IMG/VR virus record: IMGVR_UViG_3300037882_003354
Location: 124,001 to 188,000 of that record
Reading direction: 5' to 3' (one strand)
DNA: 64,000 nucleotides
In this document: in pieces, positions 8,213-55,521 of the stretch
Layout of the letters: each line of letters begins with the position of its first letter
How positions within the stretch are numbered: position 1 is the first letter of the stretch
Position numbers and translations under genes: made by a program
The notes under the pieces: model-generated
Databases searched by the model: none
What the model was told of the DNA's origin: nothing
What the model saw: only the letters and a program-made list of their open reading frames with translations

Positions 8213-8445
8213 GCAAGATGAGTGAACTATTTTACGACCTCCTGGAGATGCTGGAACTGGGCCGCACTGATTCAGAAATCAGCCTGGCCACCGGCTTCCC
8301 GCTGGAAGCCATTGCCATCTGGCGGGCAGATGCTGAACTGCGCCCTGAGAGCGCCAGTGAAGAGAGCGACTGGCAAACCGACACCGGGCCTGGTGATGAA
8401 GAGGATGGCTGGGACGATGACGAATGGTTCATCCAGGCCGAGTGA
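8209..8445 (+). CDS. highly acidic small protein
   Basis: short HTH-like N-half, D/E/W-rich tail. Confidence 0.7.
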   Translation: MSKMSELFYDLLEMLELGRTDSEISLATGFPLEAIAIWRADAELRPESASEESDWQTDTGPGDEEDGWDDDEWFIQAE

Positions 8446-28996: not shown

Positions 28997-31900
28997 TTAT
29001 TTCTTCAATCCGGCCAACTTTAAAATATCGGTCAACCCTTCGCTCATACCCAATTTTGCCTTTAGTGCCGCCAACCCTTCTGGGCTGGTGGGACTCTTTG
29101 TTCTTTCTTTTTCCAAATCTTTACCAGTTACTTTCCAGTCGCCACCCTGCGCTTTACGCTGCGCAGCAGGAATGTCGCTTTTGTTGGGGCTTTCGCTTTT
29201 TAATTTACCAGTACGCTCCAAATCATGCAGCATATCTATACGATCGCGGTAGCCGGCAACACCTGGTTTGATGTCATGTGCGGCCATGCGCTGTTGCACT
29301 GTGGGATTGTCTGCGTGTCGCATGGTGGTGTCATACTGATGACTGTGATCTGGATTATGTTCTTCAGAGGACATGATGTTCGTGTTGAAGTCTTCACCGC
29401 CATGGCCTTGATCACCAATGCCTTCCACTTTACCCTTGATTCGATTTAAGATTTCTTTCAATCCATCAATGGTCAATCCATCACCGCCCACTGGCTTGCC
29501 ATGACGCTCTTGGTATTCTTGTGTGAGTTTTTCCATGAACATGCCAGCCATCTGCTCAGCTTGCTCACCTGCTTGCTCGCCAAACATTTCTGAAATCTTC
29601 TTCTTGACGTCGATGACAATGCCTTCTTCGCCACGGAATGGTCCAACGTCTGGATTGTCCCTGTTGTAAAAACTTTTGACAATCTTGGCCACTTCTTTGA
29701 TCATGCCTTCTTTGCTCATCATTTTGGGAATTCCGCTGCCGTCCATATTTTCAGCAGCCGGTGTCGCAGGAGCCACTGGTTCGGCGGGCGCTGGTTCAGC
29801 AGGGGCGGGCTCTTGTGCAGGAGCCTGTGTGCCACTCATGCCCAGGGCCACAGTGAGTTCTGGGTAATTGTCTGTTGCCCATAATTTAAACACTTCTAGA
29901 GCGTTGGTTTCTGCATCAACATTGGCCATGTCTTTGAACTTGTCTTCTAGATCCGAATCCTCAATGCCCAGTTCGTTAAAAAATTGCCAGGCAGTCTGTC
30001 CATCTGGTCCCAGTTTTAATTCTGGACCCGACTGATCTTGTGGCAATTCTTCCAGTGCTTGCTTCATCAGGGCTATTTGATCGTCTGTCAACTTGCCCTG
30101 TTCGGTAGCATCTGCCCAGTCTTCAAAAGCATCGATGCTTTCGGCTGGTGACTTTTCTTTGGACATCTTCTCTGTTTCACGACGTGCTTTGTCACTGAGG
30201 TTAGTCACACGGCCACGACCGTCTTTCTTGGATGATGCTTTCCATTCGCCCTCATCTTTCCAACTGACTACCCGGCCAGTCTCATCTTTGGTCTCTGACC
30301 TTTCTTCCTGAACATAGTCTGCCAGGTCCACCTGGTTGACTTCGCTCATGATGCGGTGCAGCAATGGGAAATAGCCAGCCAGTTCTTCCTGGAAGGAACT
30401 CTGTGTAAATGTCTGCTTGTATTGTTCCATGGTGACCTCATCCATGGTCAGCCCGTCGTCCATCATGTCTTCTTCATTAAATCCCGCCATCCAGGATTCG
30501 TAGTGACTGCGCCGACCCAGGGCGGCCATCTGTGATTTAAGTTCATGCAGGCGGCCAATGGCACGCTCTGTGATGCCAGTGGCATCGTCATGTAAACTTG
30601 CATGCTGTACTTTGCGCTGGAATTCAGCCAGTTGAGCGATCTGCTCGCTCATGCCTATGATGGCCTTGCCTGCTGGATCATGCGGTGTGCCACCATGATC
30701 CACGTGTTGTGCCATGGCAAATGCACCGGCAGTGTGGATGAATGGATACTTGAATCGCTCGCCCTCTTTATTCTGTATGAAGATGGCCTTGATATTTTTG
30801 CGTTGGCTACGGCTGCCTGCATATTCTTCGTCCACTGCATGGGCGTGCCGCACGATGACTTCTGTTTTACCTTGCACGGCGCGGCTGGTTTTCCGGCTGC
30901 TTTTATTATTCCAACGACCTTCTTGTAAGCCTTCTGCCATGTCTTGCTGCCCAGCATCCAATCCTTTGCCGTACAAGGACACAGCGCGAGCGCCTGCTCC
31001 ATAGGGCGGATTTAGGTTGATACCCTGCCGGCCGTGTTCAACACCTATGGTATACCAATCAATTTTATCGGAACCACCAGCCTTTTGTGCTTGCTGTTTC
31101 CAGAAAGTCAAACTGTCCATGCCTTCTGACACGCCTTGTTCAGGATTCTCATCATGCCAAATGTGTTCATTTTCTTCACCATACACCTCGACAAAATCAT
31201 CAAGCGTCATGGTGTCTGCAGAAATCTTCATATCTTCTATTGATACGTTTTCCGACATGCCTTGCTCTGGAAGTTGTCCCGTAGGCCCCGCCATCTTGCT
31301 TCTTGGACTGCGGGTGATTTTGTATTTGGTTAGTCGATTGGTCTTCTTCATATTCGCAACGATGCGCTGGGCCTGGTCCACACTGTGGTATGTTCCTGCT
31401 TTTTCACCGTCCCTATAAATGTGATAGACATACTCCTTGTCAACTGGATGATCCAATGTGTAATTGACGGAACCGTCTGCTGCCGAGCCTTCCGACATGC
31501 CTTGCTGATCCAACATACTCGGCAAGCCCTGTGCCTTACGAGCCATATGACGGGCATAATCTACTTTATCGTCATTAACAACATCAACTAACTCGGCCAT
31601 TTTCTTTGCTATTAAGGCGTGTGCTGTTGATGGCTTATATTTTTTCATATTCAACTTTTTAGCAACATCAATGTAAAGTTGTAAATCATTGCCATCATCG
31701 CCACCGTTAAATCCATCCGGGGCAAATTCATTTAGAGAGCCTTCCGCCACATGGTGTCTAGTTTTTTTATTTTCGTTCATGGTGTTTGTATCCTGTTCTT
31801 TGGGGCCTTGTGTTGCGGCCAAATGTTTGAAATCATTTTTGTCCAGGTTGGTCTTGGCAATGTCCCTGGTGTCAAAACGCAATAGTCTGCGCTTGGCAAA

Positions 31901-32182
31901 ATATCGCATCTCTCTTAAAAAACCATACCACATGCGCCGCACGGGATCATCACGATTTTCAGTGATACCCTGGCTGTAGTAAACTTTTAGACTGCCCAGA
32001 TCCCCCAGGCTGATGCTCACGCGGCCCAGGTTGTTGCCTTCTATGACAAAGTCAAAGTCGAAAAATCTCGCTTGCGCGGGATCAATGGTGACTGCGCCTG
32101 TTTTGTCGCCCATTTCTAAATTACTGAAACGGCTGCGAACTTTATCAAACAGGTCTTGGCTGATTATTTGAATGGCTTCCAT
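28997..32182 (-). CDS. large acidic putative internal virion protein / polyprotein
   Basis: 1061 aa; late TAAATA 5 nt upstream; repeated QG(M/V)(S/A)EG; ends ILKLAGL. Confidence 0.75.
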   Translation of the reverse strand: MEAIQIISQDLFDKVRSRFSNLEMGDKTGAVTIDPAQARFFDFDFVIEGNNLGRVSISLGDLGSLKVYYSQGITENRDDPVRRMWYGFLREMRYFAKRRLLRFDTRDIAKTNLDKNDFKHLAATQGPKEQDTNTMNENKKTRHHVAEGSLNEFAPDGFNGGDDGNDLQLYIDVAKKLNMKKYKPSTAHALIAKKMAELVDVVNDDKVDYARHMARKAQGLPSMLDQQGMSEGSAADGSVNYTLDHPVDKEYVYHIYRDGEKAGTYHSVDQAQRIVANMKKTNRLTKYKITRSPRSKMAGPTGQLPEQGMSENVSIEDMKISADTMTLDDFVEVYGEENEHIWHDENPEQGVSEGMDSLTFWKQQAQKAGGSDKIDWYTIGVEHGRQGINLNPPYGAGARAVSLYGKGLDAGQQDMAEGLQEGRWNNKSSRKTSRAVQGKTEVIVRHAHAVDEEYAGSRSQRKNIKAIFIQNKEGERFKYPFIHTAGAFAMAQHVDHGGTPHDPAGKAIIGMSEQIAQLAEFQRKVQHASLHDDATGITERAIGRLHELKSQMAALGRRSHYESWMAGFNEEDMMDDGLTMDEVTMEQYKQTFTQSSFQEELAGYFPLLHRIMSEVNQVDLADYVQEERSETKDETGRVVSWKDEGEWKASSKKDGRGRVTNLSDKARRETEKMSKEKSPAESIDAFEDWADATEQGKLTDDQIALMKQALEELPQDQSGPELKLGPDGQTAWQFFNELGIEDSDLEDKFKDMANVDAETNALEVFKLWATDNYPELTVALGMSGTQAPAQEPAPAEPAPAEPVAPATPAAENMDGSGIPKMMSKEGMIKEVAKIVKSFYNRDNPDVGPFRGEEGIVIDVKKKISEMFGEQAGEQAEQMAGMFMEKLTQEYQERHGKPVGGDGLTIDGLKEILNRIKGKVEGIGDQGHGGEDFNTNIMSSEEHNPDHSHQYDTTMRHADNPTVQQRMAAHDIKPGVAGYRDRIDMLHDLERTGKLKSESPNKSDIPAAQRKAQGGDWKVTGKDLEKERTKSPTSPEGLAALKAKLGMSEGLTDILKLAGLKK
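30930..31756 (-). repeat. five 17-nt dispersed in-frame repeats, consensus CAAGGCATGTCGGAAGG
   Basis: copies at 30930-30946, 31122-31138, 31248-31264, 31488-31504, 31740-31756. Confidence 0.85.
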
Positions 32183-32193
32183 AGTATTATTTA

Positions 32194-33783
32194 TTAATAA
32201 CTGCTGATATAGATGGGCATGGGCAGGTCGTGTTCTTCCATGCCCTCCTGGTCTCGCATCTTTTCATAGATACTTGGGTCCCAATCCTGCAGGATCATGA
32301 TCATGCGTACAGCCAACAGCAGGCTGGACACCAGGTCATCGTGTTGTCCGGGTTTGGCCTTGAAACTCAAGGCTGCAGACACATATGTTTTGAGTTCACT
32401 GATCAGGCTCTTGCTGTGCAATTTAAGTTTTTTATTCTCAATCAGTTGTTTTAACTTGGCACAGGCATTGATCTTGGCCACATGTGTGGTATTAAATCCC
32501 TTGCGGAACCTGCGCACATGACCCTTTTTAACCGGCTCGCTTAAAAACATGCCAGGGAATGTTTCTTCTCCCAGCTCACTAATGGCCACCAGGGCCGCTT
32601 CACCTATGCTGTTGTTTTCCACACTGTAGTATATGCTGGGCACCAGGCCCTGCTTGGCACATTCATCCTCGATAAATTTCAGCAGATCTCTAAGCACACG
32701 TGCCTGCCCCTGCACCGGCGTGGTATTGTGGTTCCATTCACACACCTGTTCCAGACTGGGCACTTCTATGACTTCAATGGCTGCATAATCTCCACCAGTG
32801 CCCAGACTGGGATCCAGAGATACGATGTAGGTCATGGCAGGGTTCACTCGTTTGTACCATCGGGCCTGCCCCATTTTCATCAAGGGTTCTTTGCCTTCCA
32901 AATTGGACAGGGTGATGCTGTTAACCAAGGTTTCATCGAACACCAGGAATATGCACTCGTGTTCTCTTTGAAATCTTTCAGCCCCCACACGACTGCGTTC
33001 GGCCTCAGCCCAGATTTCGTCACGATCTGGATGTTCACTCCAGATGGCAATACAGGGGTAGAAACCATTCCTGCCCAGTTCGGTCCGATTGCCGTATTCG
33101 TCGAATCTCTTGTTGGCCTCGTTCCAGATCTGTGCAAACTGATCCTCGTCGCTGTTGGGGGTGGATGTGATGATGGCTTTACCGCCAGTGGCCAGGGTAG
33201 GGCTGATACTGGTCCAAAACTCAGTGGCAATGCCAGGTTCCACATAGGCAAACTCATCCAGATAGATCAAGCTCAAGCTCATGCCTCGTCCAGTGGTTTC
33301 AGTGGTAGTCTGTGCCACAATGCGGCTGCCATTTTCAAATTCAATACTCTGCTTGTTGTAACTGGTGACACCCGCACGTATCCAATCAGGGCATGTCTCG
33401 TATGCATAACGCAGACGTTGCATGATTTCCTGCGCACCTGTATATTTGTGCGCAGCAATCAGTATGGTGCTGTCGGGCACAAACATGGCATACCATAACA
33501 GGTAGCCCACCGCAGTGGTGGTTTTCCCCAGCTGACGCCCCAGCATGTTCACACTGAATCTGTGTTTGTGATAACTGTCCAGCAGCCGTTGTTGGTAGGG
33601 AAAGGGGGCGTATTGTATTTTGCCCTTGGTGGGGTGTTGTATAAAAAAGTAATTGGCTAAAAAATATTCAGGGCCAGTGTCAGCATGCTGGCATTTCATT
33701 AGATCCGCAATGTCCTGCTCAGAAAATTTCTGTGTGACATTGGCCTTTTTAACCAAGTTGCCGTCTAAGTTTTTTGATCCCAT
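32194..33783 (-). CDS. terL: terminase large subunit (gp17-like)
   Basis: GRQLGKTT, YLDEFA, ITSTPN, F.REHEC, DPSLGTGGDY, HDDLV. Confidence 0.93.
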   Translation of the reverse strand: MGSKNLDGNLVKKANVTQKFSEQDIADLMKCQHADTGPEYFLANYFFIQHPTKGKIQYAPFPYQQRLLDSYHKHRFSVNMLGRQLGKTTTAVGYLLWYAMFVPDSTILIAAHKYTGAQEIMQRLRYAYETCPDWIRAGVTSYNKQSIEFENGSRIVAQTTTETTGRGMSLSLIYLDEFAYVEPGIATEFWTSISPTLATGGKAIITSTPNSDEDQFAQIWNEANKRFDEYGNRTELGRNGFYPCIAIWSEHPDRDEIWAEAERSRVGAERFQREHECIFLVFDETLVNSITLSNLEGKEPLMKMGQARWYKRVNPAMTYIVSLDPSLGTGGDYAAIEVIEVPSLEQVCEWNHNTTPVQGQARVLRDLLKFIEDECAKQGLVPSIYYSVENNSIGEAALVAISELGEETFPGMFLSEPVKKGHVRRFRKGFNTTHVAKINACAKLKQLIENKKLKLHSKSLISELKTYVSAALSFKAKPGQHDDLVSSLLLAVRMIMILQDWDPSIYEKMRDQEGMEEHDLPMPIYISSY

Positions 33784-33796
33784 GTGAGTATTTACT

Positions 33797-33820
33797 GAAA
33801 AGAATAGCCTCCGAAGAGGC
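33797..33820 (-). terminator. rho-independent terminator, cUUCGg loop
   Basis: GCCTC-TTCG-GAGGC-TATTCTTTTC. Confidence 0.75.
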
Positions 33821-33844
33821 CATCTGGTTCAGGTGTCTAATGTA

Positions 33845-34837
33845 TTAAGCAGAATGTACTGTAGCTTTCTTGCCCTTGGCTTGCAGGCTTCTGGCAATAT
33901 TTTCTGCTTGACGGCGGTCGTCGAATGTTTTCCAAGTACGACCGTCAATTGCCACTGCAAACTTGGCGGGTTCAACTTCGTGACCAAGTTCGTGTTGCAA
34001 TTCTTGTTTCTTAAAAGACCGATGTGAAAGGTCGCCCATGTCGCCTTCAGCGACAAAACGCTTGTACTCGTCCATGAGTGACTCTTCCATGGTGGCAAAA
34101 GCCTTGGGACGGTCACCATCCATACGATCGCCAACACCAGGGTGGCCAGCTGGATCTTGGTTCATACGTCCAGGATCAATCATGGCATCTGCATCCATGT
34201 CTGGTATGTCATCAACGCCAGTGGGCGTATTATCATACTGCCCTTCCTTGGCTTCTTCGTCGTCTTCATCACCAGCGTCATCACCGTTGATCCGGTCAAT
34301 CACAGCTCGCATCTCGTCACCAGCACTGGCGGCAGGACCCATGACTGTCATGGGCTCGGCAGTTAATGTCACAGGTGCTGGTTCTACACCCAGATCATGT
34401 GGCTCAACCTTGTGTACACCAGCCAGGGACATAATGTCCTTGAGCATGTTGCTCAACTCTTCACCACTGCCGGCAGTGATGTTAACACTAGCGGGAGTAT
34501 GAGGGTGTGCCATGTCGGGCATGGGAGACATGCCGCATGCTGACGACCCTTCTGCAACACCTTGGTCTTCAAGCATGTTTGCGTCTTCCAGTTCAGACAT
34601 CACCAGGGTCGACAGGTATTTTAAATCAGTGGGGTTCTTGCCCACCATTTTTAAATATTTCGATACATGATCATCGATATTACCACGATTTATGTTTGGC
34701 ATTCCCATCAATTTTTGTGCTATTTTTTTTGCAGCATCCTCATCCCGCATGCCAATATTGGACGAAACATCTTCTGCCATGTTGGTATTTTTGGCATCCA
34801 ACTCGGCCAGGCGCTTGATAACGTCAATCATGTTCAT
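33845..34837 (-). CDS. acidic putative head/internal protein
   Basis: 330 aa; NMAED, QGVAEG, FVAEG repeats; AAGGA SD. Confidence 0.7.
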   Translation of the reverse strand: MNMIDVIKRLAELDAKNTNMAEDVSSNIGMRDEDAAKKIAQKLMGMPNINRGNIDDHVSKYLKMVGKNPTDLKYLSTLVMSELEDANMLEDQGVAEGSSACGMSPMPDMAHPHTPASVNITAGSGEELSNMLKDIMSLAGVHKVEPHDLGVEPAPVTLTAEPMTVMGPAASAGDEMRAVIDRINGDDAGDEDDEEAKEGQYDNTPTGVDDIPDMDADAMIDPGRMNQDPAGHPGVGDRMDGDRPKAFATMEESLMDEYKRFVAEGDMGDLSHRSFKKQELQHELGHEVEPAKFAVAIDGRTWKTFDDRRQAENIARSLQAKGKKATVHSA

Positions 34838-34839
34838 AA

Positions 34840-35430
34840 TTATTTCCTTGTTTGGGCTGATGCCAACACAGTTCCTGCGTCTGCAGGGGTATCAGTATTA
34901 TACTTGGCTGGGCCGTCTGTGGGGATTTCTTCCCCACGAGCCTTGCGTTGCAACTTTAGCAGAGCGTTGAGTTCTTTGACAAACTCACCGTTGTATTTGT
35001 CACCATAGTAATCTTCAAACTTGGGACTGCCTGCTTCTTTATAATCAGGATCATCAAGCAGTGCACCGGTGCGTGGCTCCACCAGAGTTTGATATTCTTC
35101 ACTGGGCTCGCCAGGACGACGAACTACTAAATTTTGTTTGCTCACTTCTAGGCCAGCGGCCAAATATTCTGTAAGTTCCTGCTGAGTGGTGGGATACTGC
35201 AAGCTGACTTCGTAGATGCTGACTTCGCAATTCTTGACCTGCGGGAAGTCCAAGGGCAGTGCCTGAATGGGAGTCTTGCTCACCTTCTTGAACACATTGA
35301 CTTCAAATCGTTCCAGCATGGATTTCAATTTTTCTTCTTGTTCAGAGGTAAAGTCGCCTGCTACCTTGACTCGAAAGTCATATGTTTTACCAGAGGTAGA
35401 TTCTGAGAGATAGTCGAGGAATGTTTTCAT
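34840..35430 (-). CDS. hypothetical virion-associated protein
   Basis: MKTFLDYLSE start typical of T4-like head proteins; late box upstream. Confidence 0.7.
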   Translation of the reverse strand: MKTFLDYLSESTSGKTYDFRVKVAGDFTSEQEEKLKSMLERFEVNVFKKVSKTPIQALPLDFPQVKNCEVSIYEVSLQYPTTQQELTEYLAAGLEVSKQNLVVRRPGEPSEEYQTLVEPRTGALLDDPDYKEAGSPKFEDYYGDKYNGEFVKELNALLKLQRKARGEEIPTDGPAKYNTDTPADAGTVLASAQTRK

Positions 35431-48283: not shown

Positions 48284-49147
48284 TCAAAGCCGACGATTGC
48301 TCAAGACAACTTTGATGGCCTTGGCAAAAGAGAATGAGTTCAACAAATCTTGTAGTTGATATTTTGCAATCACTGGAGAACCAACACCACCCACCAGACA
48401 AAGATTGGCTAGATCGTCTCCCCATTTTTCCGCAAATACATCGAAGTACTTTTGATTGCGTTGATTAATTTGTTGTTGATGTTCAGGACCTGCCCAGGTG
48501 CTCTTGCCGGCAAAGTGCAATATATAACTGTGACTGTAGTATTTTACCGGAAAATTATGGGAGATGGCGCGTATGCGATAGTCCACATCTTCGCCCCCGC
48601 CCACACCAAACCTCTCATCAAACAATCCCACTTGGTTGTACACCGTGGCAGGCAATACAAATGCATAAAAACCCATCAACAGGCGTTCGAAAAATCCCGA
48701 CCGCAGCCGGTCCCGGTGTGCCTGAGCAATCTTGCACAGATCAGCATATTGATTGTTATACTCATCCAGGTTCATGGTCTGCTGCAAGGTCAGTTGACCG
48801 CTGGCGTACAAATGAGTTTGGTTGCAACTGGGCATCACAATGGCATCTGGATGTTGCGTCAGTTCATGGGACCAGCCGGGGGTGAATACGATGTCGTTGT
48901 TGAGCACAATCAGAGTTCTGCCACGCGCAATGCCAATCATGTTGTTGACATTCTTGGCAAAACTCTGGGGTGTTGTATTGGATATCACGCTGGCTTGAGT
49001 GTCGTATGTGCCCTCGTTATCATTGTCAATCAGGTACACCTCATCCCCTGTGCCCAGCCGTGTGCTGCTAAAAAAAGAATCCAGGGCAAGTTTTGTGTAA
49101 AAATTAGAACCCCGGGTGGTGATCATGACGTATACATTGCCCATCAT
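48284..49147 (-). CDS. GT2 family glycosyltransferase
   Basis: LIDN, SFA.NVN, LNNDI, VGLFDERF..GGGEDVDY..R. Confidence 0.85.
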   Translation of the reverse strand: MMGNVYVMITTRGSNFYTKLALDSFFSSTRLGTGDEVYLIDNDNEGTYDTQASVISNTTPQSFAKNVNNMIGIARGRTLIVLNNDIVFTPGWSHELTQHPDAIVMPSCNQTHLYASGQLTLQQTMNLDEYNNQYADLCKIAQAHRDRLRSGFFERLLMGFYAFVLPATVYNQVGLFDERFGVGGGEDVDYRIRAISHNFPVKYYSHSYILHFAGKSTWAGPEHQQQINQRNQKYFDVFAEKWGDDLANLCLVGGVGSPVIAKYQLQDLLNSFSFAKAIKVVLSNRRL

Positions 49148-49944
49148 TTTTTATTCCAAAAATCCAAACTCAACGATCGATAGTATTCGGTCAATTCTGT
49201 TCCAATCACTTGTTCAGCAGGTGGACTGGCTCGTTTTAATTCCGGCCTAATGTCATGCAAGCCCATCAATCCATATGCTCGATCATTTTCTGGTTTGGGA
49301 GTCAGGTGCGCATGATTGAGATTGATAGAATTTGGTATTTCTAAAAAATCAAATATTCTACCCACGGTTGTCACAGAGTTTTCCACAATGTCACCATAGT
49401 CTAAAAACAACATGCTGGTGGGAGCATACTCCCAACCCAATTTTAAACTGGTCCATGGGATGTTGATATACTTTTCCCATAATAGTCTGCATCTATTTTG
49501 ATTGTTCACCGGCTTGTTTGTGTCAATTAACTCTTGATCAATATATGTGATCGTGTGGTTGTTTCTTTCTATTAACAGAATAAAACTGCTGAGAATTTCT
49601 GGAATGTCTCTGACTGTGCAGATGATCTTGGGCGGCTGGCCGTGTAGCTCGGTTAGAAACTTTATATGCCGCGGCCACTCTCTGTGTTTATCTATGATGT
49701 TGGTCTGGGCAACATGCCGGTAACTGGATTCAAATACTCCGTGGACAATGTTGTTCAACTGTCTGGGATCTTGATCCACCAGATGGCCAGTGATACCTGG
49801 CCACCTGTTTTTGATGACATTAATAAGATCCAACACTGGGCTGGTGGTGGTAGTGTAAACATCGGGATGCTGACTCAGCATGCTGGCCAACACCGTGCTA
49901 CCGCTTCTGGGCAGACCCGATATCATGAACACACGTTTATCCAT
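49144..49944 (-). CDS. sulfotransferase
   Basis: 5'-PSB motif SGLPRSGST, DK.R.W, VRD..EILSS. Confidence 0.85.
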   Translation of the reverse strand: MDKRVFMISGLPRSGSTVLASMLSQHPDVYTTTTSPVLDLINVIKNRWPGITGHLVDQDPRQLNNIVHGVFESSYRHVAQTNIIDKHREWPRHIKFLTELHGQPPKIICTVRDIPEILSSFILLIERNNHTITYIDQELIDTNKPVNNQNRCRLLWEKYINIPWTSLKLGWEYAPTSMLFLDYGDIVENSVTTVGRIFDFLEIPNSINLNHAHLTPKPENDRAYGLMGLHDIRPELKRASPPAEQVIGTELTEYYRSLSLDFWNKK

Positions 49945-50857
49945 ATGCCCGTATGGTGTTAAAAAATTGTTGCCATTCCAATTTACGCTGTTCCCAGGAC
50001 CAATAGTGATTGTAATGTGTGGACTGGCGATGTATGTGGTATTGAGTGCTGACCTTCCAATACTCTGCAATGGCCAAATCTAGTTCCCGCGCAAATCTAG
50101 ATGCCAATACCTGGCGATGGTTTAGACCCACCGGAACCATGCGTGCCCAATCGCTGCATGTTTCAGGCAATGCACCATGGCTGGTGGTCACCTGCAGGCA
50201 GCCGGCGGCGGCAGCTTCTATGGCTGCCAGGCAACTGGTTTCTTCAAAAATACTGGGATATGCAAATACATGCGCTTGTTGCAATGCTGCCCTGACCACA
50301 TCGTTGGGTTGATATTCGTGGAAATTTACACCAGGTGTGTTTTTTGTACGTTTAAATATTTCGTCAAACCTGCCCTGGGTTATTTTTACAAAATGATCCC
50401 CGTATATTTTGGCACTGCTGTACACATCGAGTTCAATGTCTGTTCGATCCAGTAACTCAACTGCATCTAACAATATGTCCAGACCACGCCAGGGGGTGCT
50501 GGTGTAGATCAACTTGGTCTTGCCTTCACATCTGGGCATGAACTGTATGGGCTCAATGGCATTTTTTATGACAATACTCTTGTATGCCGGTACATTGAAC
50601 ACTTGACAAAATTTATTGTACTGCCAGTGACTGACAAATACAAAATAATCCACACGTTCTATAAACACTGGATTGGACATCAGTGCCACTTGTTCTTCGT
50701 TGGTGTTCAAGTGTTGCCATACCACATTGATCTTGTTGGGGTCAATTTTTGCATGATCGCACGAACTCAAGATCAGGTTCACTCGGTCCTGCCAGTCGGT
50801 GCCCACATGTTTTAACATGTTGAAATACAGTATCTCACTGCCGCCCATGGGATTCAT
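49937..50857 (-). CDS. GT4 family glycosyltransferase
   Basis: GGSE, VFVS.WQ, I.NAI, YTSTPWRGL, YPS.FEETSC...IEA.AAG. Confidence 0.85.
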   Translation of the reverse strand: MNPMGGSEILYFNMLKHVGTDWQDRVNLILSSCDHAKIDPNKINVVWQHLNTNEEQVALMSNPVFIERVDYFVFVSHWQYNKFCQVFNVPAYKSIVIKNAIEPIQFMPRCEGKTKLIYTSTPWRGLDILLDAVELLDRTDIELDVYSSAKIYGDHFVKITQGRFDEIFKRTKNTPGVNFHEYQPNDVVRAALQQAHVFAYPSIFEETSCLAAIEAAAAGCLQVTTSHGALPETCSDWARMVPVGLNHRQVLASRFARELDLAIAEYWKVSTQYHIHRQSTHYNHYWSWEQRKLEWQQFFNTIRAYG

Positions 50858-51504
50858 AGACTCTCCGCAAATTTCATCAGGGTATCGTATATCTTGACCT
50901 TGGGTTTGAGCATACGATAAATGGGATTTTCCAGACGCTCACGGGCCTTTTGCCCCTTGCCAGTCAACACCAGCACAGGCGTGGCGCCTGCTCGCTCGGC
51001 CATGGTTAGGTCTTCTATGGTGTCGCCAACATAGGCGCCGCCGGCTATTTTGACGCCAGGACTGTTATTTTCCGCATGTTTAAACAGTCCCAGATTGGGC
51101 TTGGCATAAACATCATCCTTGCGTGAACTGGTGTTGTACCAGATGCCATCTATGCTGGTGCATCCTGCCTGCCCCAGCAAATTCAACATGTGCCGGTTGC
51201 AATCTTCCACTTGCTCCACAGTGACCTTTCGGTGACTTACACTGGGCTGATCATATAAGAAAAGCACCCGGTGTCCCTTGCTGCGTATGATGGCAACAGC
51301 ACGAAATGCATCTGCTATGGGAATAAATTTGTCAGGACCAGTTATTGCATCATGACATTCGCACACCACACCGTCCCTGTCCAGAGCAATGGTGAATTTA
51401 TCAAAAGTCGCCGGCATGACCAGGGCAGTAGATGTTGCAATACCGGAGTTCTCGCTCACCGCGGCATTGGGCAACATGTTTTTGTCAACACTAAATCTGC
51501 CCAT
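50854..51504 (-). CDS. D,D-heptose 1,7-bisphosphate phosphatase-like HAD (GmhB-like)
   Basis: LDRDGV, KP..G.F, VGD...D, LVLTGKG. Confidence 0.75.
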   Translation of the reverse strand: MGRFSVDKNMLPNAAVSENSGIATSTALVMPATFDKFTIALDRDGVVCECHDAITGPDKFIPIADAFRAVAIIRSKGHRVLFLYDQPSVSHRKVTVEQVEDCNRHMLNLLGQAGCTSIDGIWYNTSSRKDDVYAKPNLGLFKHAENNSPGVKIAGGAYVGDTIEDLTMAERAGATPVLVLTGKGQKARERLENPIYRMLKPKVKIYDTLMKFAESL

Positions 51505-51507
51505 GAT

Positions 51508-52233
51508 TTACTCGTATAGTGATTTAATATCTTGCGGCGTGGAGACACGTTGTTTTATACCATCCAGCCATCCTGGGAAATCAGCAGTGAACAAATTGTT
51601 GGTGTTTTGTGAACAGGTGGTGGTGGGCCATGCCCAGATGTCTATGCCCAGGTCCTTGAGTTTGTTGCACAGCACCTGACTCTCATTAAAGAATCTGCCG
51701 TATTGTGTCTGATGCTCAAATACCACCTTGACATCATTGTTGTTTTCATCTGTGATGGAGACGTTGCTGTTCATCAAGGCTTGAATCACAGGCCGGTCCA
51801 GCTTCATGCAGGCTGTGCTGGCATAGGAAACTTTAAGGAATCCCTGCTGATCAAACTGCAGATTGGATTTGTCAAAATCAATGTCATATATCACACTGTT
51901 GGTCTTCTTGCTGATCACTGGCAGCACCACCACCGGCAGGTCAGACATCATGATTCGAACCATTTCATTGGCATCCCAGGCCAGATCATGATCAACAAAC
52001 ACCAGGCTGTCCACTTCCTGCTCAAATGCTATCTTGAGCAAATCGTTTTTTGCCATGGGAACAGACCGATCGTTGCCGATGAAAACCGGTATCACTGTGA
52101 TGCCCACGCTCATGGCAGACTTGATGGTGTCTGACAGACTGTGTACATAGAATACATCAAGTTTACTTTCCCGGGCCACAGTGGCCAGGATTACAAGTTT
52201 GGATTTTAGTGCTGTGTTATTTGGTGTCATCAT
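51508..52233 (-). CDS. GT-A fold glycosyltransferase-like, divergent paralog of 52230..53009
   Basis: AKN.L, FVDHD, degenerate ED motif. Confidence 0.6.
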   Translation of the reverse strand: MMTPNNTALKSKLVILATVARESKLDVFYVHSLSDTIKSAMSVGITVIPVFIGNDRSVPMAKNDLLKIAFEQEVDSLVFVDHDLAWDANEMVRIMMSDLPVVVLPVISKKTNSVIYDIDFDKSNLQFDQQGFLKVSYASTACMKLDRPVIQALMNSNVSITDENNNDVKVVFEHQTQYGRFFNESQVLCNKLKDLGIDIWAWPTTTCSQNTNNLFTADFPGWLDGIKQRVSTPQDIKSLYE

Positions 52234-53009
52234 ATGCCTTTGTTGTTGATATATCTATTGAGGTAGTTGTTGCCGTAACTGGTGCGGGCGGCTGGTGGTG
52301 TTTGTGTTGTAGCAGGTGTGGCGGTGGGTCTGGTCTTGGCCAGCCAGGCATCAAAGTTTCCAGTGTACTTTTTAAATCCAATATGGTTGCAGGTGATGCT
52401 GGTGTCCAACCAGGTTTTAAATCCCAGTTGTTTGAGTTTTCTGCACAGGTGGATGTCTTCGCTGATCAAGCCGCCATTTTCCACAACCACCTCGAACACC
52501 CAGCGTCGGTCTTTGTTTTGGTCCAATTCCACATACACTGGACTGGCATCCCATATGGCATCCACTGCACGACGACTGAACCTGAGAAAACCAGTGCCTA
52601 GCCCATCAACCTCCAATAAATTGGTCACAGGGTCCTTGGCAGCGTATGGATCATCCATCTTGGCCACATATAGTTCAGTCTCACCCTTCTTGGGGTAAGT
52701 GCCGCCCACAATGTCCACGGGATAATTTAACAGTCGGTAGAACCATTCAGGTTCCCACTCAATGTCATTGTCGATGAATATGATGTCGTCGCAATCCAGT
52801 TCCCTGACCAGAGCAATAGTGTCGTTTCTGGCTCTTTGTACCAGGGCATCATAACTGACCCAGATGGGGATGATTTCCACATTCATCTCTGCGGCTAGTT
52901 TGACGGTGTTGACCAGACTGTTCACATACCATACATCAATGCTGCCATCATAGCAGGGTGTTCCCACCATGACTCGTCTTTTCTTTTTTATTTCCATCAT
53001 GCCATCCAT
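52230..53009 (-). CDS. GT-A fold glycosyltransferase
   Basis: TPCYDG, VQRARN, FIDND, GG.YPKK, GTGFL, SED..LC, CNHIG. Confidence 0.75.
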   Translation of the reverse strand: MDGMMEIKKKRRVMVGTPCYDGSIDVWYVNSLVNTVKLAAEMNVEIIPIWVSYDALVQRARNDTIALVRELDCDDIIFIDNDIEWEPEWFYRLLNYPVDIVGGTYPKKGETELYVAKMDDPYAAKDPVTNLLEVDGLGTGFLRFSRRAVDAIWDASPVYVELDQNKDRRWVFEVVVENGGLISEDIHLCRKLKQLGFKTWLDTSITCNHIGFKKYTGNFDAWLAKTRPTATPATTQTPPAARTSYGNNYLNRYINNKGI

Positions 53010-53821
53010 AACATTTGTCGCTTGATATGGTCAAAATCATATTTCCAAAAACTGCTGGTCACATATGTTTGCCATAGGTCTGCAGGAATAATGGGCTTCC
53101 TGGCCTTATATTCTACACGACGACGAACAGTATGTAAACCAGAAATATTGGCCTGCTGATCAAATTCGTCGTAACTGTCTTCCACATTTTCAAAGTCGTG
53201 TTCAAACCAGGGTTCATTGATAAACTTATAAATTTGTTGCATGGTTTCCCTGGGACGTTTGGTCAACACATCATAATCCACCACACACAACATGTCTTTT
53301 TCGTTGCCATACATGGCTTGCTTGGTACAAGCAATGGGGCCGCTGACGTAACCACCGCCACCATCCTGGCTCATCAGCATGTTCACTCGATTGAACACCG
53401 TGGGCAGGTCCTGATGCTGAAACAATGCCTTGATGGTGTAGGGATTCCTGGCGTTCAACTGCTCGAAACTGTCCAGAATCCAGGGCACATCCCTAATGCA
53501 CACTATGATCTTGCTGGCGGGAAACAAGTCGCGCACCATGGGCGTTTGTGCACACCAGGCTCGATTGGTGTTAAAGCAAACCTCAGGTCCACCTTGGTAA
53601 AATGTGGAAAATAATCCGCGTATCAATGCTGCCCGTTTTTCCACAGGAACTGCCGACTCCATGCCCACTGCGGTGTGCGTCACTTGCAGTATGTTCCTGG
53701 AATAATCCTGCAATGGGTCAGAAATACTTGCATGAAACCTGGGGTTTTGTTTCAATATGGCACTGAGCAAGGTGGACCCACTGCGTGGAAGTCCGGATAT
53801 GAAGTGATATTTTTGCATCAT
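52997..53821 (-). CDS. sulfotransferase
   Basis: FISGLPRSGSTLL..IL.QNP, IRD..WILDS, GLH.VR. Confidence 0.85.
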   Translation of the reverse strand: MMQKYHFISGLPRSGSTLLSAILKQNPRFHASISDPLQDYSRNILQVTHTAVGMESAVPVEKRAALIRGLFSTFYQGGPEVCFNTNRAWCAQTPMVRDLFPASKIIVCIRDVPWILDSFEQLNARNPYTIKALFQHQDLPTVFNRVNMLMSQDGGGGYVSGPIACTKQAMYGNEKDMLCVVDYDVLTKRPRETMQQIYKFINEPWFEHDFENVEDSYDEFDQQANISGLHTVRRRVEYKARKPIIPADLWQTYVTSSFWKYDFDHIKRQMLWMA

Positions 53822-55521
53822 TCTTTCACCAACAATTTACCCAGATCAGGCAGGTACAGATACTTTATATCCGACTTGAGCAGAGTGTTGATGGCGTCAA
53901 CCAGGGTTTCCACCAAGGGTTCCCCTGCCAGGTTGAAACTAGTGTTGAACACCATGGGAACCGATGTCCGGGTATAAAATGCCTGGATCACAGCATGGTA
54001 ATGAGAGTTGTCCTGTGCGTTGACCGTCTGCACTCGACAGGTGCCATCCACATGAGTCACTGCCGGAATCTCACCCAGTTTGTCAGTGGCCACATCAATG
54101 GCGTACATCATGAATGGGCTGGATTTTAGACCTCGCATGTCAAACCAGGTGGCAGCCTGTTCTTCCAGTATGCTGGCAGCAAATGGTCTAAACCATTCCC
54201 GACCTTTAACACGGTTCACACGGTCCTTGCCATCTTGAACACGCGGATCAAACAACATGGATCGGTTGCCCAGTGCCCGGGGGCCGCCTTCTGCACGACC
54301 ACTAAACATGGCCACGATGTTTTGGGTGGCCAATAATTCTGCAACGTCGTCAGCCAGGGCATGTTGCATTTTAAGTTGCGGCACTTGTGCCAGCAACTGA
54401 TCCAACATCTGATAGTTGGGTTGTGCGCCCAGGTACACATGCTTGAGTGGTCTGACCACTGAGTCCTCACTGTGCAAATGCCAGGCCAGTCGTGCCAGCC
54501 CCAGTGCAGTTCCGCCGTCGTGGCTGATGGGATCCACATAGAGATTGATGTCTTTACATCTGTCCAGGAGGTAATAGTTGGCCACACAGTTGAGTGCATA
54601 CCCACCAGCCAAGACAACATTTTTAATGCCAGTGGCAGCCACTGCTCGTTCGATCAGGATGCCCAGGAGTTCCTGTGTTTCCTGTTGCACATGGAAGGCC
54701 AGGTCGCGGTCCATGTCGGTGACTTTACTGAAGTCCCAGTGCCATTCCTTGGGGTCTTGTTTGCGTCGTAGATCAGGGAATCTATCCTCATCAATAAATG
54801 CACCAGCAGGATACATGGGCAACAGCAGGTTTTTATTGCCGCGGCCTTCTACGAAAAATGCAGGGATGGCTGCGTTGCGTTTGCCATAAGGCGCCAGCCC
54901 CATGGTTTTGCCGGCTTCGATAAATCCAAAACCCAGATACTGACTGACTGCTTCGTATGCCTTGGTGATGGTGACGGAATTGTCAAATTCCTGCAGGCCA
55001 TTGTTGAAGTAGGGAGTGCGTCCGTCAGAATATCTCTTGTACAAGGGCTCAAATGCAGCTGGGTAACTGCACTTGTAGACACTTTCTGTCTCGTATCCGC
55101 CCACCGGTGTACCAGTACCGTCTGGACCTGTGGTGGTGGACACCATGCTGCCGGCACCGTCCACCACAATGGCCAGGGCTTCAGTAAATCCGCTGTTGTA
55201 GAACGCACCAGCGGCATGGCCCAGGTGATGTTGGTGTCCTAGATTGGTGACCTTGACACCAGGATTGAATTTACGCACCAGGGCCGAGTAACTGTCCTCA
55301 CCGGTCCAGGGCAAGATGGCCAGTTCTGGATTGGTGCCACCAATCACCAGTTCGTCAATACGGTGACTCTGCAGGCATTCCAGCATGGCACGGAAGGGAT
55401 TGCCGTCATATTTCATGCGACTCAGTCGTTCTTCTTCTGAATAATAAACCACTTCACCGTCCACCACCAGGCATGCGCTGCCATTGTGGCCGGGATTTAT
55501 AGCAAGTATTGAATACGTCAT
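53818..55521 (-). CDS. O-carbamoyltransferase (NodU/CmcH/TobZ family)
   Basis: GHN.S, EEERLSR.K, HHLGHA, VDGAG, GKTMGLAPYG, GG.ALN, EGGPRALGNRS, RE.FRPFA, NTSFN. Confidence 0.92.
   Translation of the reverse strand: MTYSILAINPGHNGSACLVVDGEVVYYSEEERLSRMKYDGNPFRAMLECLQSHRIDELVIGGTNPELAILPWTGEDSYSALVRKFNPGVKVTNLGHQHHLGHAAGAFYNSGFTEALAIVVDGAGSMVSTTTGPDGTGTPVGGYETESVYKCSYPAAFEPLYKRYSDGRTPYFNNGLQEFDNSVTITKAYEAVSQYLGFGFIEAGKTMGLAPYGKRNAAIPAFFVEGRGNKNLLLPMYPAGAFIDEDRFPDLRRKQDPKEWHWDFSKVTDMDRDLAFHVQQETQELLGILIERAVAATGIKNVVLAGGYALNCVANYYLLDRCKDINLYVDPISHDGGTALGLARLAWHLHSEDSVVRPLKHVYLGAQPNYQMLDQLLAQVPQLKMQHALADDVAELLATQNIVAMFSGRAEGGPRALGNRSMLFDPRVQDGKDRVNRVKGREWFRPFAASILEEQAATWFDMRGLKSSPFMMYAIDVATDKLGEIPAVTHVDGTCRVQTVNAQDNSHYHAVIQAFYTRTSVPMVFNTSFNLAGEPLVETLVDAINTLLKSDIKYLYLPDLGKLLVKE

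Follow-up and report, generated by a model that had tools for sequence, protein, structure and literature searches.

In phage T4, MKTYQEFIAE serves as a capsid targeting sequence: any protein to which it is attached becomes packaged, and the sequence itself is removed by cleavage (PMC8442874, PMC5694885), and the internal protein genes of T-even phages are, as summarised in PMC3012670 (citing Repoila 1994), polymorphic, with diverse cargo and only the targeting sequence conserved. Polyvalent proteins of phages and conjugative elements are predicted to enter the host with the DNA, and their processing into units has been proposed (Iyer et al. 2017, PMC5512222). In giant phages, head proteins can carry N-terminal propeptides, 111-254 residues long, which are cleaved at multiple motif sites, with the small fragments exiting the capsid (PMC10052503, PMC5694885). 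Finally, integron gene cassettes offer an analogy at the DNA level only. Here we describe a locus that has features in common with each of these systems.

The window (the whole stretch of 64,000 nucleotides that we analysed, from IMG/VR record IMGVR_UViG_3300037882_003354) encodes on its minus strand a 1061-aa protein, hereafter the carrier, that matches phrog_13484 ('virion structural protein', PHROGs) and has >2367 homologs, including gp278 of phage PA5oct, which is marked ESI-MS/MS in the PA5oct record and whose gene neighbourhood has the order seen in the window. A terminase gene adjoins the carrier gene and genes for UvsX, UvsY and UvsW lie just downstream (PHROGs); the PA5oct and window TerL proteins are 55% identical. 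The carrier comprises the following features, in which an arrow marks a predicted cut:

28997-32182, minus strand: carrier ORF, 1061 aa, intact; homolog of PA5oct gp278 plus four inserted cassettes
31781-32182, minus strand: conserved N-terminal domain (aa 1-134), near-invariant in two alignments
31772-31780, minus strand: MNE (aa 135-137), conserved hydrophobic-x-Glu site ending the N-terminal domain (alignment)
31736-31753, minus strand: joint 1, HHVAEG (Glu147); its 3' part GTGGCGGAAGGC is identical to the family consensus
31490-31741, minus strand: module A (aa 148-231, 84 aa), AT-rich
31487-31504, minus strand: joint 2, QGMSEG (Glu231), exact copy of the 17-nt repeat
31250-31489, minus strand: module B (aa 232-311, 80 aa), most widespread of the module families
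31247-31264, minus strand: joint 3, QGMSEN (Glu311), exact copy of the 17-nt repeat
31124-31249, minus strand: module C (aa 312-353, 42 aa)
31121-31138, minus strand: joint 4, QGVSEG (Glu353)
30932-31123, minus strand: module D (aa 354-417, 64 aa)
30929-30946, minus strand: joint 5, QDMAEG (Glu417), followed by LQE↓GRW, which opens the core
30323-30928, minus strand: conserved core (aa 419 to ~620), the portion common to PA5oct gp278
29000-29050, minus strand: C-terminal GMSE↓G (GMSEG at aa 1045-1049, 12 residues short of the C-terminus) and tail LTDILKLAGLKK

The N-terminal domain is a candidate propeptide or targeting domain, and residues 40-108 of the insert-free homolog P0010 are predicted to form a sheet and a helix (pLDDT ~70-79). 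In insert-free homologs MNE↓S-RW stands directly against the core; E136 and S137 are invariant in 59 of these proteins, while the residues immediately upstream vary, and the site falls in a segment of pLDDT <50, a predicted disordered linker that is the insertion point. The core (pLDDT 72-85 in the insert-free homolog, with invariant columns in the carrier alignment) is recognised in PA5oct gp278 by tblastn over aa 429-614 (E 6e-15). The insertion site is empty (...MNES/RW...) in ~89 of 109 anchored homologs (~80%). A reading of the sequence alone (hereafter the sequence-only reading) had proposed a putative virion polyprotein assembled from cassettes; the cassettes are real, and most homologs lack modules altogether. 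The carrier is not a dedicated polyprotein but a conserved jumbo-phage virion protein with cassettes acquired at its propeptide/core junction. No Pfam family was found anywhere in the 1061-aa carrier at E <= 0.01, a profile search of PDB sequences returned zero matches to the carrier family, and Foldseek against the PDB with an insert-free carrier model gave nothing below E 0.4, the GNAT-like matches being scattered, weak and not significant.

The modules are bounded by five peptide joints with Glu-to-Glu spacings of 84, 80, 42 and 64 aa. The pattern [MVLI][SA]E[GN] occurs six times in the carrier versus 0.32 expected, a count reached by none of 20000 protein shuffles, and its rate is 5.7 per 1000 aa, whereas the window's other ORFs reach 0.16: two further copies lie in an acidic neighbour ORF (see below), and the other 79 ORFs hold just three between them. 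The recurrence of GMSEG near the C-terminus, picked up at first reading, was found again at aa 1045-1049, and IIGMSEQ (Glu513) is located inside the conserved folded core. Of the five in-frame 17-nt repeats initially claimed, all five joints hold as peptides, but as DNA there are four copies and a half-copy, because the HHVAEG joint matches the family consensus only at its 3' GTGGCGGAAGGC. The four copies lie within 3 mismatches and two are identical (0.26 expected in shuffles; 0/100 reach four).

Across the family the canonical joint is QGVAEG (CAAGGTGTGGCGGAAGG), with 17-21 nt of conserved DNA. We found the exact 17-mer in at least 120 IMG/VR stretches, always in long ORFs and in the QGVAEG frame, with at least 150 unrelated flank contexts. 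In loci that were not picked by DNA pattern, the Val codon of the motif is GTG in 24/25 cases (22% elsewhere, P ~1e-15) and the Ala codon is GCG in 19/27 (6% elsewhere, P ~1e-17), counts in which some of the joint copies are non-independent. Conservation of the joint at the DNA level exceeds what the protein requires. At the protein level, the joint profile has Glu at P1 in 371/397 copies (93%), V/M/L/I at P3 in 341/346 (99%; mostly Val or Met), a small residue at P2 and G, A, D, E or N at P1', with P5 and P1' variable. The T4 protease prefers Leu or Ile at P3, which counts against a cut by a protease of that type.

DNA-level conservation by itself would explain the repeat if the carrier were an uncleaved, polyvalent multi-domain protein that works as one chain, with the motif serving as flexible linker and recombination joint. 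The carrier indeed shows the polyvalent-type pattern of several unrelated modules and a core in a structural-gene context, known phage proteins with 2-15 effector domains include GNAT and ParB, with some packaged unprocessed (PMC5512222), and the C-terminal part of the carrier gave a weak, sub-threshold match to LPD15 (E 0.014, 15.7 bits versus a cutoff of 27). A pure linker, however, needs neither Glu at 93% of P1 positions nor a hydrophobic residue at 99% of P3 positions while P5 and P1' vary, and the same module can begin at the same residue after an N-terminal leader of cleavable type (see below). Moreover, the zincin-like metallopeptidase that is embedded in polyvalent proteins and is their usual processing domain was not found anywhere in the carrier in Pfam searches. 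For all the likeness between the two systems, in which many unrelated small domains (including GNAT and ParB-like domains) share one polypeptide, no universal linker motif or DNA-level joint has been described for polyvalent proteins, and the modules of the present system are for the most part new and, with a median of 79 aa, much smaller. We regard a single uncleaved chain as distinctly unlikely.

The joints also mark where close relatives of the carrier diverge. Proteins P0001 to P0004 differ in their cassette sets although their identity to the carrier is 81-95%, and the flanking DNA of loci L002 to L004 is 88-96% identical to that of the window. By blastn, identity to L002 and L003 stops at aa 147.7 and 148.7, respectively, at joint 1; it resumes in L002 at aa 309.3, at joint 3 with an 8-nt overlap, and L003 rejoins at aa 411. 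In L004, the alignment jumps from joint 2 to joint 3 (aa 231.7/306.3; 17-nt overlap) with deletion of module B, and an additional module of 287 nt is inserted at aa 418, at joint 5. Homolog alignment had been proposed as a check on the cassette idea, and it revealed modules that vary in number and identity between conserved flanks of near-identical relatives. The further claim that the repeat is a DNA recombination joint gains support from identity breaking exactly at the motif and from the excess of GTG and GCG codons. Cassette exchange more likely proceeds by the phage's own homologous recombination at the short homology. As in integrons, unrelated cassettes are gained, lost and reordered at a recurring short site; unlike integron cassettes, those of the carrier sit in frame inside a single ORF, with a translated site, and no integrase family emerged from family searches of 54 of the larger ORFs in the window.

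False module combinations could also arise if metagenome assemblers had mis-joined contigs at a short repeat, and the comparison sequences are mostly metagenomic contigs, with the repeat common to many loci. At 17-21 nt, the repeat is probably shorter than the k-mers of final assemblies, which argues against such mis-joining, as do the reading frame kept in all of the at least 150 contexts, the five joints within the single ORF of the window and the agreement of independent assemblies on the flanks. We give this explanation hardly any credence: assembly chimeras were rejected on account of a repeat that is too short and a frame that is always kept.

The inserted modules of 84, 80, 42 and 64 aa are mutually unrelated, as had been proposed: they do not cross-match, and each matches a different set of proteins. 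None of the four had a match in Pfam. Two trivial origins were rejected, namely tandem duplication, since the modules are unrelated to one another, and a coding artefact on the other strand, since plus-strand ORFs are short here. A phmmer search with aa 148-417 retrieved 76 proteins, mostly matching one module each; these are unrelated multi-module proteins that contain as many as 8 QGVAE↓G linkers. Module A, whose AT-richness had caught the eye at the outset (GC 0.37-0.39 versus ~0.48), has 23 homologs, 22 of them in proteins without the carrier core, with edges at the motif Glu (offset 0 or -1). Module B has 36 homologs, none within the carrier family, and its cluster of 48 copies has 20 types of left and 32 types of right neighbour; module C has 8 homologs, one of which sits at the C-terminus of P0184, a protein homologous to the product of the acidic neighbour gene; and module D has 18, with 11 outside the carrier family and edges on the motif. 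In related phages, 399 internal modules (median size 79 aa) fall into 236 clusters, and 111 carriers represent 109 architectures. The expectation that modules recur in other genes was borne out, the same modules being present in many genes and bounded by the same motif. All predictions of the sequence-only reading that were open to computation turned out favourably.

The AF2 model of module B has a beta-beta-alpha-beta core (pLDDT ~85) with the motif in floppy tails, and Foldseek against the PDB found nothing below E 0.4 for this model. Pfam searches recognised GNAT, ParB_N and LysM domains among the modules of sister carriers, and 40 of 48 module representatives have no recognisable function. 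To call the modules effectors is a guess, because most of them lack a recognisable function and the commonest lacks a structural match; an anti-host function is put forward with the same reserve. The modules are under purifying selection, with dN/dS values of 0.03-0.15 for module A, compared to copies in other carriers, and 0.08-0.34 for module D.

Such selection bears on a rival explanation in which the N-terminal domain and the modules are a disposable propeptide, an assembly or scaffold filler that is chopped by the prohead protease and expelled, with no later function. The giant-phage precedent (PMC10052503, PMC5694885) would explain a multi-site N-terminal region without a cargo role; here too, the modules and their multiple motifs lie between the N-terminal domain and the conserved core, and most homologs manage without them. 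SPN3US gp245 and phiKZ gp175 resemble the carrier in having a long N-terminal region with several Glu-ending motifs in a jumbo-phage head (PMC10052503, PMC5694885). Their propeptides, however, are lineage-fixed and presumed discarded, whereas the segments of the carrier are mobile, independently folded, under selection and common to unrelated genes, and the protease family of the related contigs is S77 (T4-type), not S80. Filler needs neither the low dN/dS of module A nor 236 different families, and it does not account for enzyme domains among the modules (GNAT, ParB_N, LysM), for the confident compact fold predicted for module B or for the reuse of modules in unrelated carriers and as single genes behind targeting-type leaders. 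A throw-away propeptide is therefore an improbable reading.

The preferred reading takes the modules as cargo that would be freed by a cut in the head. No protease, capsid or portal gene was found among 54 ORFs of the 64-kb window (PHROGs), and because the window has no head module the link to a gp21-type protease runs through its relatives PA5oct, L036 and L020. PA5oct encodes a T4-like portal, protease, scaffold and capsid protein, with gp331 matching PF03420 (E 5e-24), and the motif-bearing contigs L036 and L020 encode a Peptidase_S77 (PF03420; E 2.9e-26 in L036). A Gp23-type capsid protein is present in L036 (E 1e-99, next to Portal_T4 at E 2e-102 in the same contig), L020 and L056, with a cassette gene just downstream of each capsid gene, and the capsid protein N-terminus in motif-bearing contigs has L-x-E↓G/N sites. 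No candidate protease of another kind was found next to carriers.

N-terminal leaders that resemble the T4 capsid targeting sequence point in the same direction. In motif loci, 67 ORFs begin with M[KR]xx(x)[DEQ]-hydrophobic-hydrophobic-x-E (consensus MRAxEFIxE), a match with a chance of ~3e-4 per ORF by a rough estimate from typical residue frequencies. Moreover, the same module can follow either an MRAxEFIxE-type leader or QGVAE, with the same start residue (leader versus linker: L096 or L100 versus L031; L100 versus L099; L062 versus L010; L081 versus L120). This convergent but indirect evidence suggests that the joint is a prohead-protease site of the hydrophobic-small-Glu kind. The carrier itself starts with MEAIQIISQD, which resembles that T4 sequence only loosely, and its targeting may instead depend on the N-terminal domain or on the C-terminal ILKLAGL tail. 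That tail (LTDILKLAGLKK) is a candidate prohead-binding signal, which a cut at GMSE↓G could remove; a similar terminal motif is found at the end of the L036 scaffold protein (DIKRLAGL), at the end of PA5oct gp330 (LRRLAGIK) and at the start of PA5oct gp281, and within the window it is restricted to the two motif-bearing genes. The second of these genes and its neighbour are as follows:

33845-34837, minus strand: second carrier, an acidic 330-aa ORF; positional counterpart of PA5oct virion protein gp281
34547-34564, minus strand: joint QGVAEG of the acidic ORF
34043-34057, minus strand: joint FVAEG of the acidic ORF
34840-35430, minus strand: 196-aa ORF, phrog_14802; counterpart of PA5oct virion protein gp282

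The acidic ORF has the N-terminal signal IDVIKRLAEL, then NMAE↓D. Alignment revealed that its cassette of ~75 aa ending in QGVAEG is present in the window and L003 and absent from L002 and L004, and that the L004 homolog has a different cassette inserted directly after FVAE. The acidic neighbour gene is a second cassette carrier. The first ten residues of the 196-aa ORF, MKTFLDYLSE (35401-35430), resemble the T4 sequence MKTYQEFIAE. PA5oct gp278 and gp282 (homologs) and gp281 (positional counterpart) are virion proteins marked by ESI-MS/MS, in which head and tail are not distinguished.

These data also bear on whether the carrier could be a cytoplasmic polyprotein unrelated to the head, processed by some other protease, of the phage or the host, or by a rare-codon co-translational mechanism. 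The rare codons of the joint (GCG 6% and GTG 22% elsewhere) could slow translation at domain borders and could alternatively serve translational pausing between domains, and many carrier genes are found away from any recognisable head module. The PA5oct counterparts of both window carriers are nonetheless virion proteins, the carriers and the scaffold protein have terminal motifs in common, targeting-type leaders are interchangeable with the linker and no other protease candidate lies beside the carriers. We consider cytoplasmic processing very improbable.

On balance, we think it probable that the carrier is part of an in-frame cassette system for head-packaged cargo that is released by the prohead protease, where we infer cleavage, packaging and ejection from the sequence. 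According to this model, a carrier built from an N-terminal domain and a core, joined by a disordered linker that holds a Glu-ending processing site, would have acquired in that linker four unrelated mini-protein cassettes, each ending in (Q)(G/D)(V/M)(A/S)E↓(G/N). As protein, the joint would be a site for the T4 gp21-type prohead protease (Peptidase_S77) encoded by this phage group: the cassettes would enter the prohead as parts of the carrier, and each would be freed as a separate internal protein on maturation. As DNA, its 17-21 nt (CAAGGTGTGGCGGAAGG) would provide a common in-frame homology at which recombination could delete, insert and exchange cassettes among many carrier genes and phages.

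The model is closest to the T4 internal proteins (IPI, IPII, IPIII and Alt), from which prohead protease gp21 removes the targeting sequence: a short Glu-ending peptide likewise steers diverse cargo to the core of the prohead and carries the gp21-type cut, and the related contigs encode Peptidase_S77 along with many MRAxEFIxE-leader ORFs. It differs from them in that several cargos are held per gene, in frame and also inside conserved virion proteins, in that the internal joint QGVAE↓G is distinct from the N-terminal leader, and in that the joint is also preserved at the DNA level and coincides with recombination breakpoints, with far larger diversity. Our literature search found no paper that treats phage cassette polyproteins or the QGVAEG motif in phages.

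Should cleavage at the joints take place in the prohead, the T4 capsid-targeting principle would be widened from single tagged proteins to modular, cassette-exchanging polyproteins. It is a reasonable possibility, though short of a likely one, that uncultured PA5oct-related jumbo phages possess an integron-like in-frame system in which a joint of ~20 nt is both recombination and protease site, which moves hundreds of mini-protein families around among carrier genes and which delivers from each virion a customised cocktail of pre-made proteins with the DNA. One short sequence apparently selected both as DNA and as peptide is a rare case. If true, the system would supply a sequence rule (leader MRAxEFIxE, linker QGVAE↓G) to spot packaged cargo in metagenomes, and it would mean that several proteins can be loaded into phage capsids from one gene, a template for designed cargo. 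It would also explain how jumbo phages diversify the proteins injected with their DNA, and the hundreds of small families (236 clusters in a small sample) would be candidates for first-minute host takeover or counter-defence, a large reservoir of likely anti-defence or host-takeover factors.

The four cassettes A-D lie in an intact minus-strand ORF, the carrier, whose sole named relative, PA5oct gp278, is a virion protein by ESI-MS/MS. A second, acidic carrier, the positional counterpart of PA5oct gp281, lies on the far side of the large terminase gene:

28997-32182, minus strand: carrier ORF, 1061 aa, intact
32194-33783: large terminase, adjoining the carrier gene on one side
33845-34837, minus strand: acidic neighbour, 330 aa

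On its other side the carrier gene borders a T4-like replication/recombination block (gp32-like SSB, UvsX, UvsY and UvsW), and the tail sheath, tail tube and head-closure genes are upstream. The nearest cultured relatives are PA5oct-like Pseudomonas jumbo phages (55% TerL identity), and the order tube, head closure, structural proteins, terminase, gp279, gp278, gp32-like is common to the window and PA5oct. More than 2367 carrier homologs were found among metagenomic proteins, and a PDB search by fold and sequence found no relative of the carrier. Elsewhere in the window, two very large minus-strand ORFs (56528-59119, 863 aa; 59165-63928, 1587 aa) encode proteins in which one virion/tail-spike domain is repeated many times internally (phrog_23837, phrog_6002, phrog_4636; 11-19 stretches), with a tail-fibre C-end, and a sugar-modifying cluster among the structural genes (49144-55521, minus strand; Nol-like carbamoyltransferase, glycosyltransferases, two phrog_27463 paralogs) may modify virion or DNA.

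Of the 109 carrier homologs in which both anchors are present, about 89 keep the N-terminal domain and the core just 16-26 residues apart; in about 20 the two are separated by an insert of 97-461 aa, made up of segments ending in (Q)G(V/M)(A/S)E. The insert-free junction reads ...TMNES↓RW..KS... (arrows mark borders or putative cuts), with the Glu and Ser of MNES invariant in 59 insert-free homologs and the preceding residues variable. AlphaFold models the N-domain and the core confidently and gives this junction between them a pLDDT below 50, which, together with the invariant Glu, argues that the cassettes occupy a predicted disordered linker at a conserved hydrophobic-x-Glu site.

In the carrier, the motif Glu falls at residues 147 (HHVAEG), 231 (QGMSEG), 311 (QGMSEN), 353 (QGVSEG) and 417 (QDMAEG), a spacing that matches exactly the module lengths of 84, 80, 42 and 64 aa claimed by the sequence-only reading; the AT-richness it saw in the first module (A) is likewise borne out by composition. 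Of its five 17-nt repeats, four are present as DNA copies with at most three mismatches (two identical; 0.26 expected from shuffles), while the first joint shares GTGGCGGAAGGC only. The peptide pattern occurs six times in the carrier, compared with 0.32 in shuffles and at a rate about 36-fold above that of the other ORFs of the window, and the acidic ORF has two further copies. A further segment at carrier aa 628-680 (window ~30140-30300, minus strand; …GRVVSWKDEGEWK…NLSDKARRETEK…), an extra confined to the query and its closest relatives, is without QGVAE-type flanks here; further carriers, 30 in all, also have it, frequently as their C-terminal module (36 copies).

Module sets differ even among four relatives whose protein identity to the carrier is 81-95% (alignment A1). 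Among the homologous proteins, P0001 has just C and D; P0002 has C behind a different first module; in P0003, A, C and D stand between two extra modules; and P0004 matches P0003 minus A; P0024 includes a ParB-like module in its set, and P0010 has none. Comparison of the window with three relatives' loci revealed flanks of 88-96% DNA identity that breaks precisely at the joints: in locus L002, aa 147.7 is joined to aa 309.3 with an 8-nt overlap, and in L004 aa 231.7 is joined to aa 306.3 with a 17-nt overlap, the repeat itself, deleting module B, with an additional 287 nt at aa 418. Modules thus vary in number and identity between conserved flanks, as had been predicted, and both VAE↓G sites of the acidic gene show the same behaviour (alignment A7). 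Variation also occurs where the acidic gene meets the terminase (L002 2855-5989 compared with window 33783-33845): L002 has two additional ORFs, of 137 and 365 aa, between these genes, and its terminase ORF has 565 aa versus 529 aa in the window. The L004 carrier ortholog (contig Ga0114973_10001078) also has an in-frame stop at 8422-8424 (DSDL*DKFKD versus DSDLEDKFKD in the window) that leaves two ORFs, 807 and 300 aa long; a nonsense allele, read-through and a sequencing error are all conceivable explanations.

The modules also recur in other genes, as the same reading had anticipated. A search with aa 148-417 against 1.84 billion representative proteins returned 76 matches in proteins of 77-2157 aa, usually to one module each and at varied positions, nearly all without the carrier N-domain and core. 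Many are strings of unrelated segments split by up to eight (E/Q)QGVAE↓G joints, and for most closer matches the module borders, when projected, coincide with the motif Glu (offset 0 or -1). IMG/VR has at least 120 stretches with the canonical joint DNA, CAAGGTGTGGCGGAAGG; every match listed falls within a long ORF and is read in the QGVAEG frame, with 150 different flank contexts and no conservation past ~21 nt. When 215 carrier proteins were cut at their joints, 399 internal modules of at least 25 aa were kept (median 79 aa over all 410 internal segments), forming 236 clusters, 183 of them singletons; 111 multi-module carriers had 109 architectures, and 224 of 248 adjacent module pairs were distinct. 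Pfam identifies few modules (GNAT, ParB_N, LysM, DUF6321, GP88, DUF6886), with no match for 40 of 48 module representatives. An ORF between the capsid and cassette genes of L036 (7870-8592) resembles by eye a GIY-YIG-type homing endonuclease, and a similar ORF lies upstream of cassette genes in L005 (309-1088); these putative nucleases could stimulate recombination near cassette genes.

To compare codon use, loci were chosen by protein identity rather than DNA pattern, with the rest of the same genes as background. Codons inside the motif differed sharply from those elsewhere (Val GTG, 24/25 versus 22%, P 5e-15; Ala GCG, 19/27 versus 6%, P 2e-17; Ser TCG, 4/10 versus 6%, P 0.0017; Gln CAA, 24/26 versus 65%, P 0.0013), the copies not all being independent. 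In contrast to the joint codons, 37-45% of synonymous sites differ between module A copies in different carriers. The joint therefore appears to be selected as DNA, and its codon conservation together with the DNA breakpoints fits the use of short shared homology in recombination, a possible alternative being that the rare joint codons pause translation between domains.

The joint also appears to be selected as a peptide, with the profile of a protease site: across carriers P1 is Glu in 371/397, P3 is V, M, L or I in 341/346 and P2 is A, T or S, with P5 (Q, E or K) and P1' (G, A, D, E, N...) variable. PA5oct has a T4-like head module, and parts of it, 39-66% identical, are present on the motif-bearing IMG/VR contigs L036, L020 and L056 (Gp23-type capsid protein in all three, Peptidase_S77 protease and scaffold in L036 and L020, T4-type portal in L036), each with a cassette gene immediately downstream of the capsid gene. 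The N-terminus of the L036 capsid protein has L-x-E↓G/N sites, of which LLE↓GRW resembles the LQE↓GRW that opens the carrier core.

In T4, the prohead protease removes the capsid targeting sequence MKTYQEFIAE, and any protein fused to it gets packaged (PMC8442874, PMC5694885); T-even internal proteins are diverse and defence-countering, with only this sequence in common (PMC3012670). A comparable leader, M[KR]xx(x)[DEQ]-hydrophobic-hydrophobic-x-E (consensus MRAxEFIxE), opens 11 of 78 complete carriers and 56 of 848 other ORFs in motif-bearing loci, with a chance of ~3e-4 per ORF (a rough estimate from typical residue frequencies). These 67 ORFs in 1.1 Mb (L009-L128; e.g. L100 886.., L062, L042, L065, L102), with their near-identical leaders, suggest a greatly enlarged repertoire of head-targeted small proteins. 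The window ORF 34840-35430, counterpart of the PA5oct virion protein gp282, opens with MKTFLDYLSE (35401-35430, minus strand). One and the same module can follow either a leader or a QGVAE linker, with an identical start residue:

Modules found after a leader and after a linker
L100, leader MRATEFITE then AFDKPY...; L031, linker ...QGVAE then AFDQPY...
L100, leader MRSSEFVFE then KWSEKYKSSINC...; L099, linker ...QGVAE then EWSQKYKSSINC...
L062, leader MRATEFITE then DWNKVNKKDK...; L010, linker ...QGVAE then DWQKVNKSDK...

This equivalence is the strongest indirect argument for processing at the linker Glu, of the kind that occurs where the targeting sequence ends.

A (D/E)-I-L-K-L-A-G-L-type motif, confined in the window to the two motif-bearing genes, ends the carrier right after GMSE↓G (29000-29035, minus strand) and opens the acidic neighbour right before NMAE↓D (34808-34828, minus strand), recurring in its interior (34415-34435, minus strand). 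It also ends the scaffold proteins of L036 (6495-6518) and PA5oct (gp330), opens PA5oct gp281 and is found at L001 2992-3030; we infer that it may be a prohead-core binding or docking signal removed by cleavage.

Copies in different carriers give dN/dS values of 0.03-0.15 (module A) and 0.08-0.34 (module D), which argues that the modules are selected proteins rather than neutral spacer. The main rival reading, a propeptide cut at several sites and then discarded, as in SPN3US (PMC10052503), fits the region's position and is at odds with this selection and with module reuse and enzyme content. AlphaFold predicts for module B a confident beta-beta-alpha-beta core, for which a PDB fold search gave no match, with the joint in low-confidence tails, where it would therefore be accessible. 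Remote module B homologs (40-50% identical) in other lineages have their own repeated linker, rich in hydrophobic-x-Glu (P0187, P0190 and P0194; EEVELDEA, repeated five times, as in P0187; DVEQVDE in P0190; E(E/D)VEQVD, repeated three times). An equivalent architecture may exist in other phage lineages, each with a joint of its own. In every lineage, module B homologs keep K-(L/M)-A-G-P-x-G-x-L-P-E, Glu-ending, LAG-containing and more widely conserved than QGVAE, just ahead of the linker (alignment A4, C-terminal part).

The evidence best supports a model in which T4-type prohead targeting and processing underlie an in-frame cargo-cassette system, whose modules would be packaged, cleaved, injected and functional, much like T4 internal proteins. 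The cassette proteins resemble polyvalent proteins (PMC5512222) but are without the polyvalent peptidase domain, and the system adds a universal joint conserved in DNA and peptide, of which we found no description in the literature. In this model, exchangeable mini-proteins are borne at putative protease sites by a conserved virion protein and by one neighbour or more, with the translated joint doubling as a recombination site, and the same cassettes also circulate in dedicated multi-cassette genes and single leader-tagged genes.
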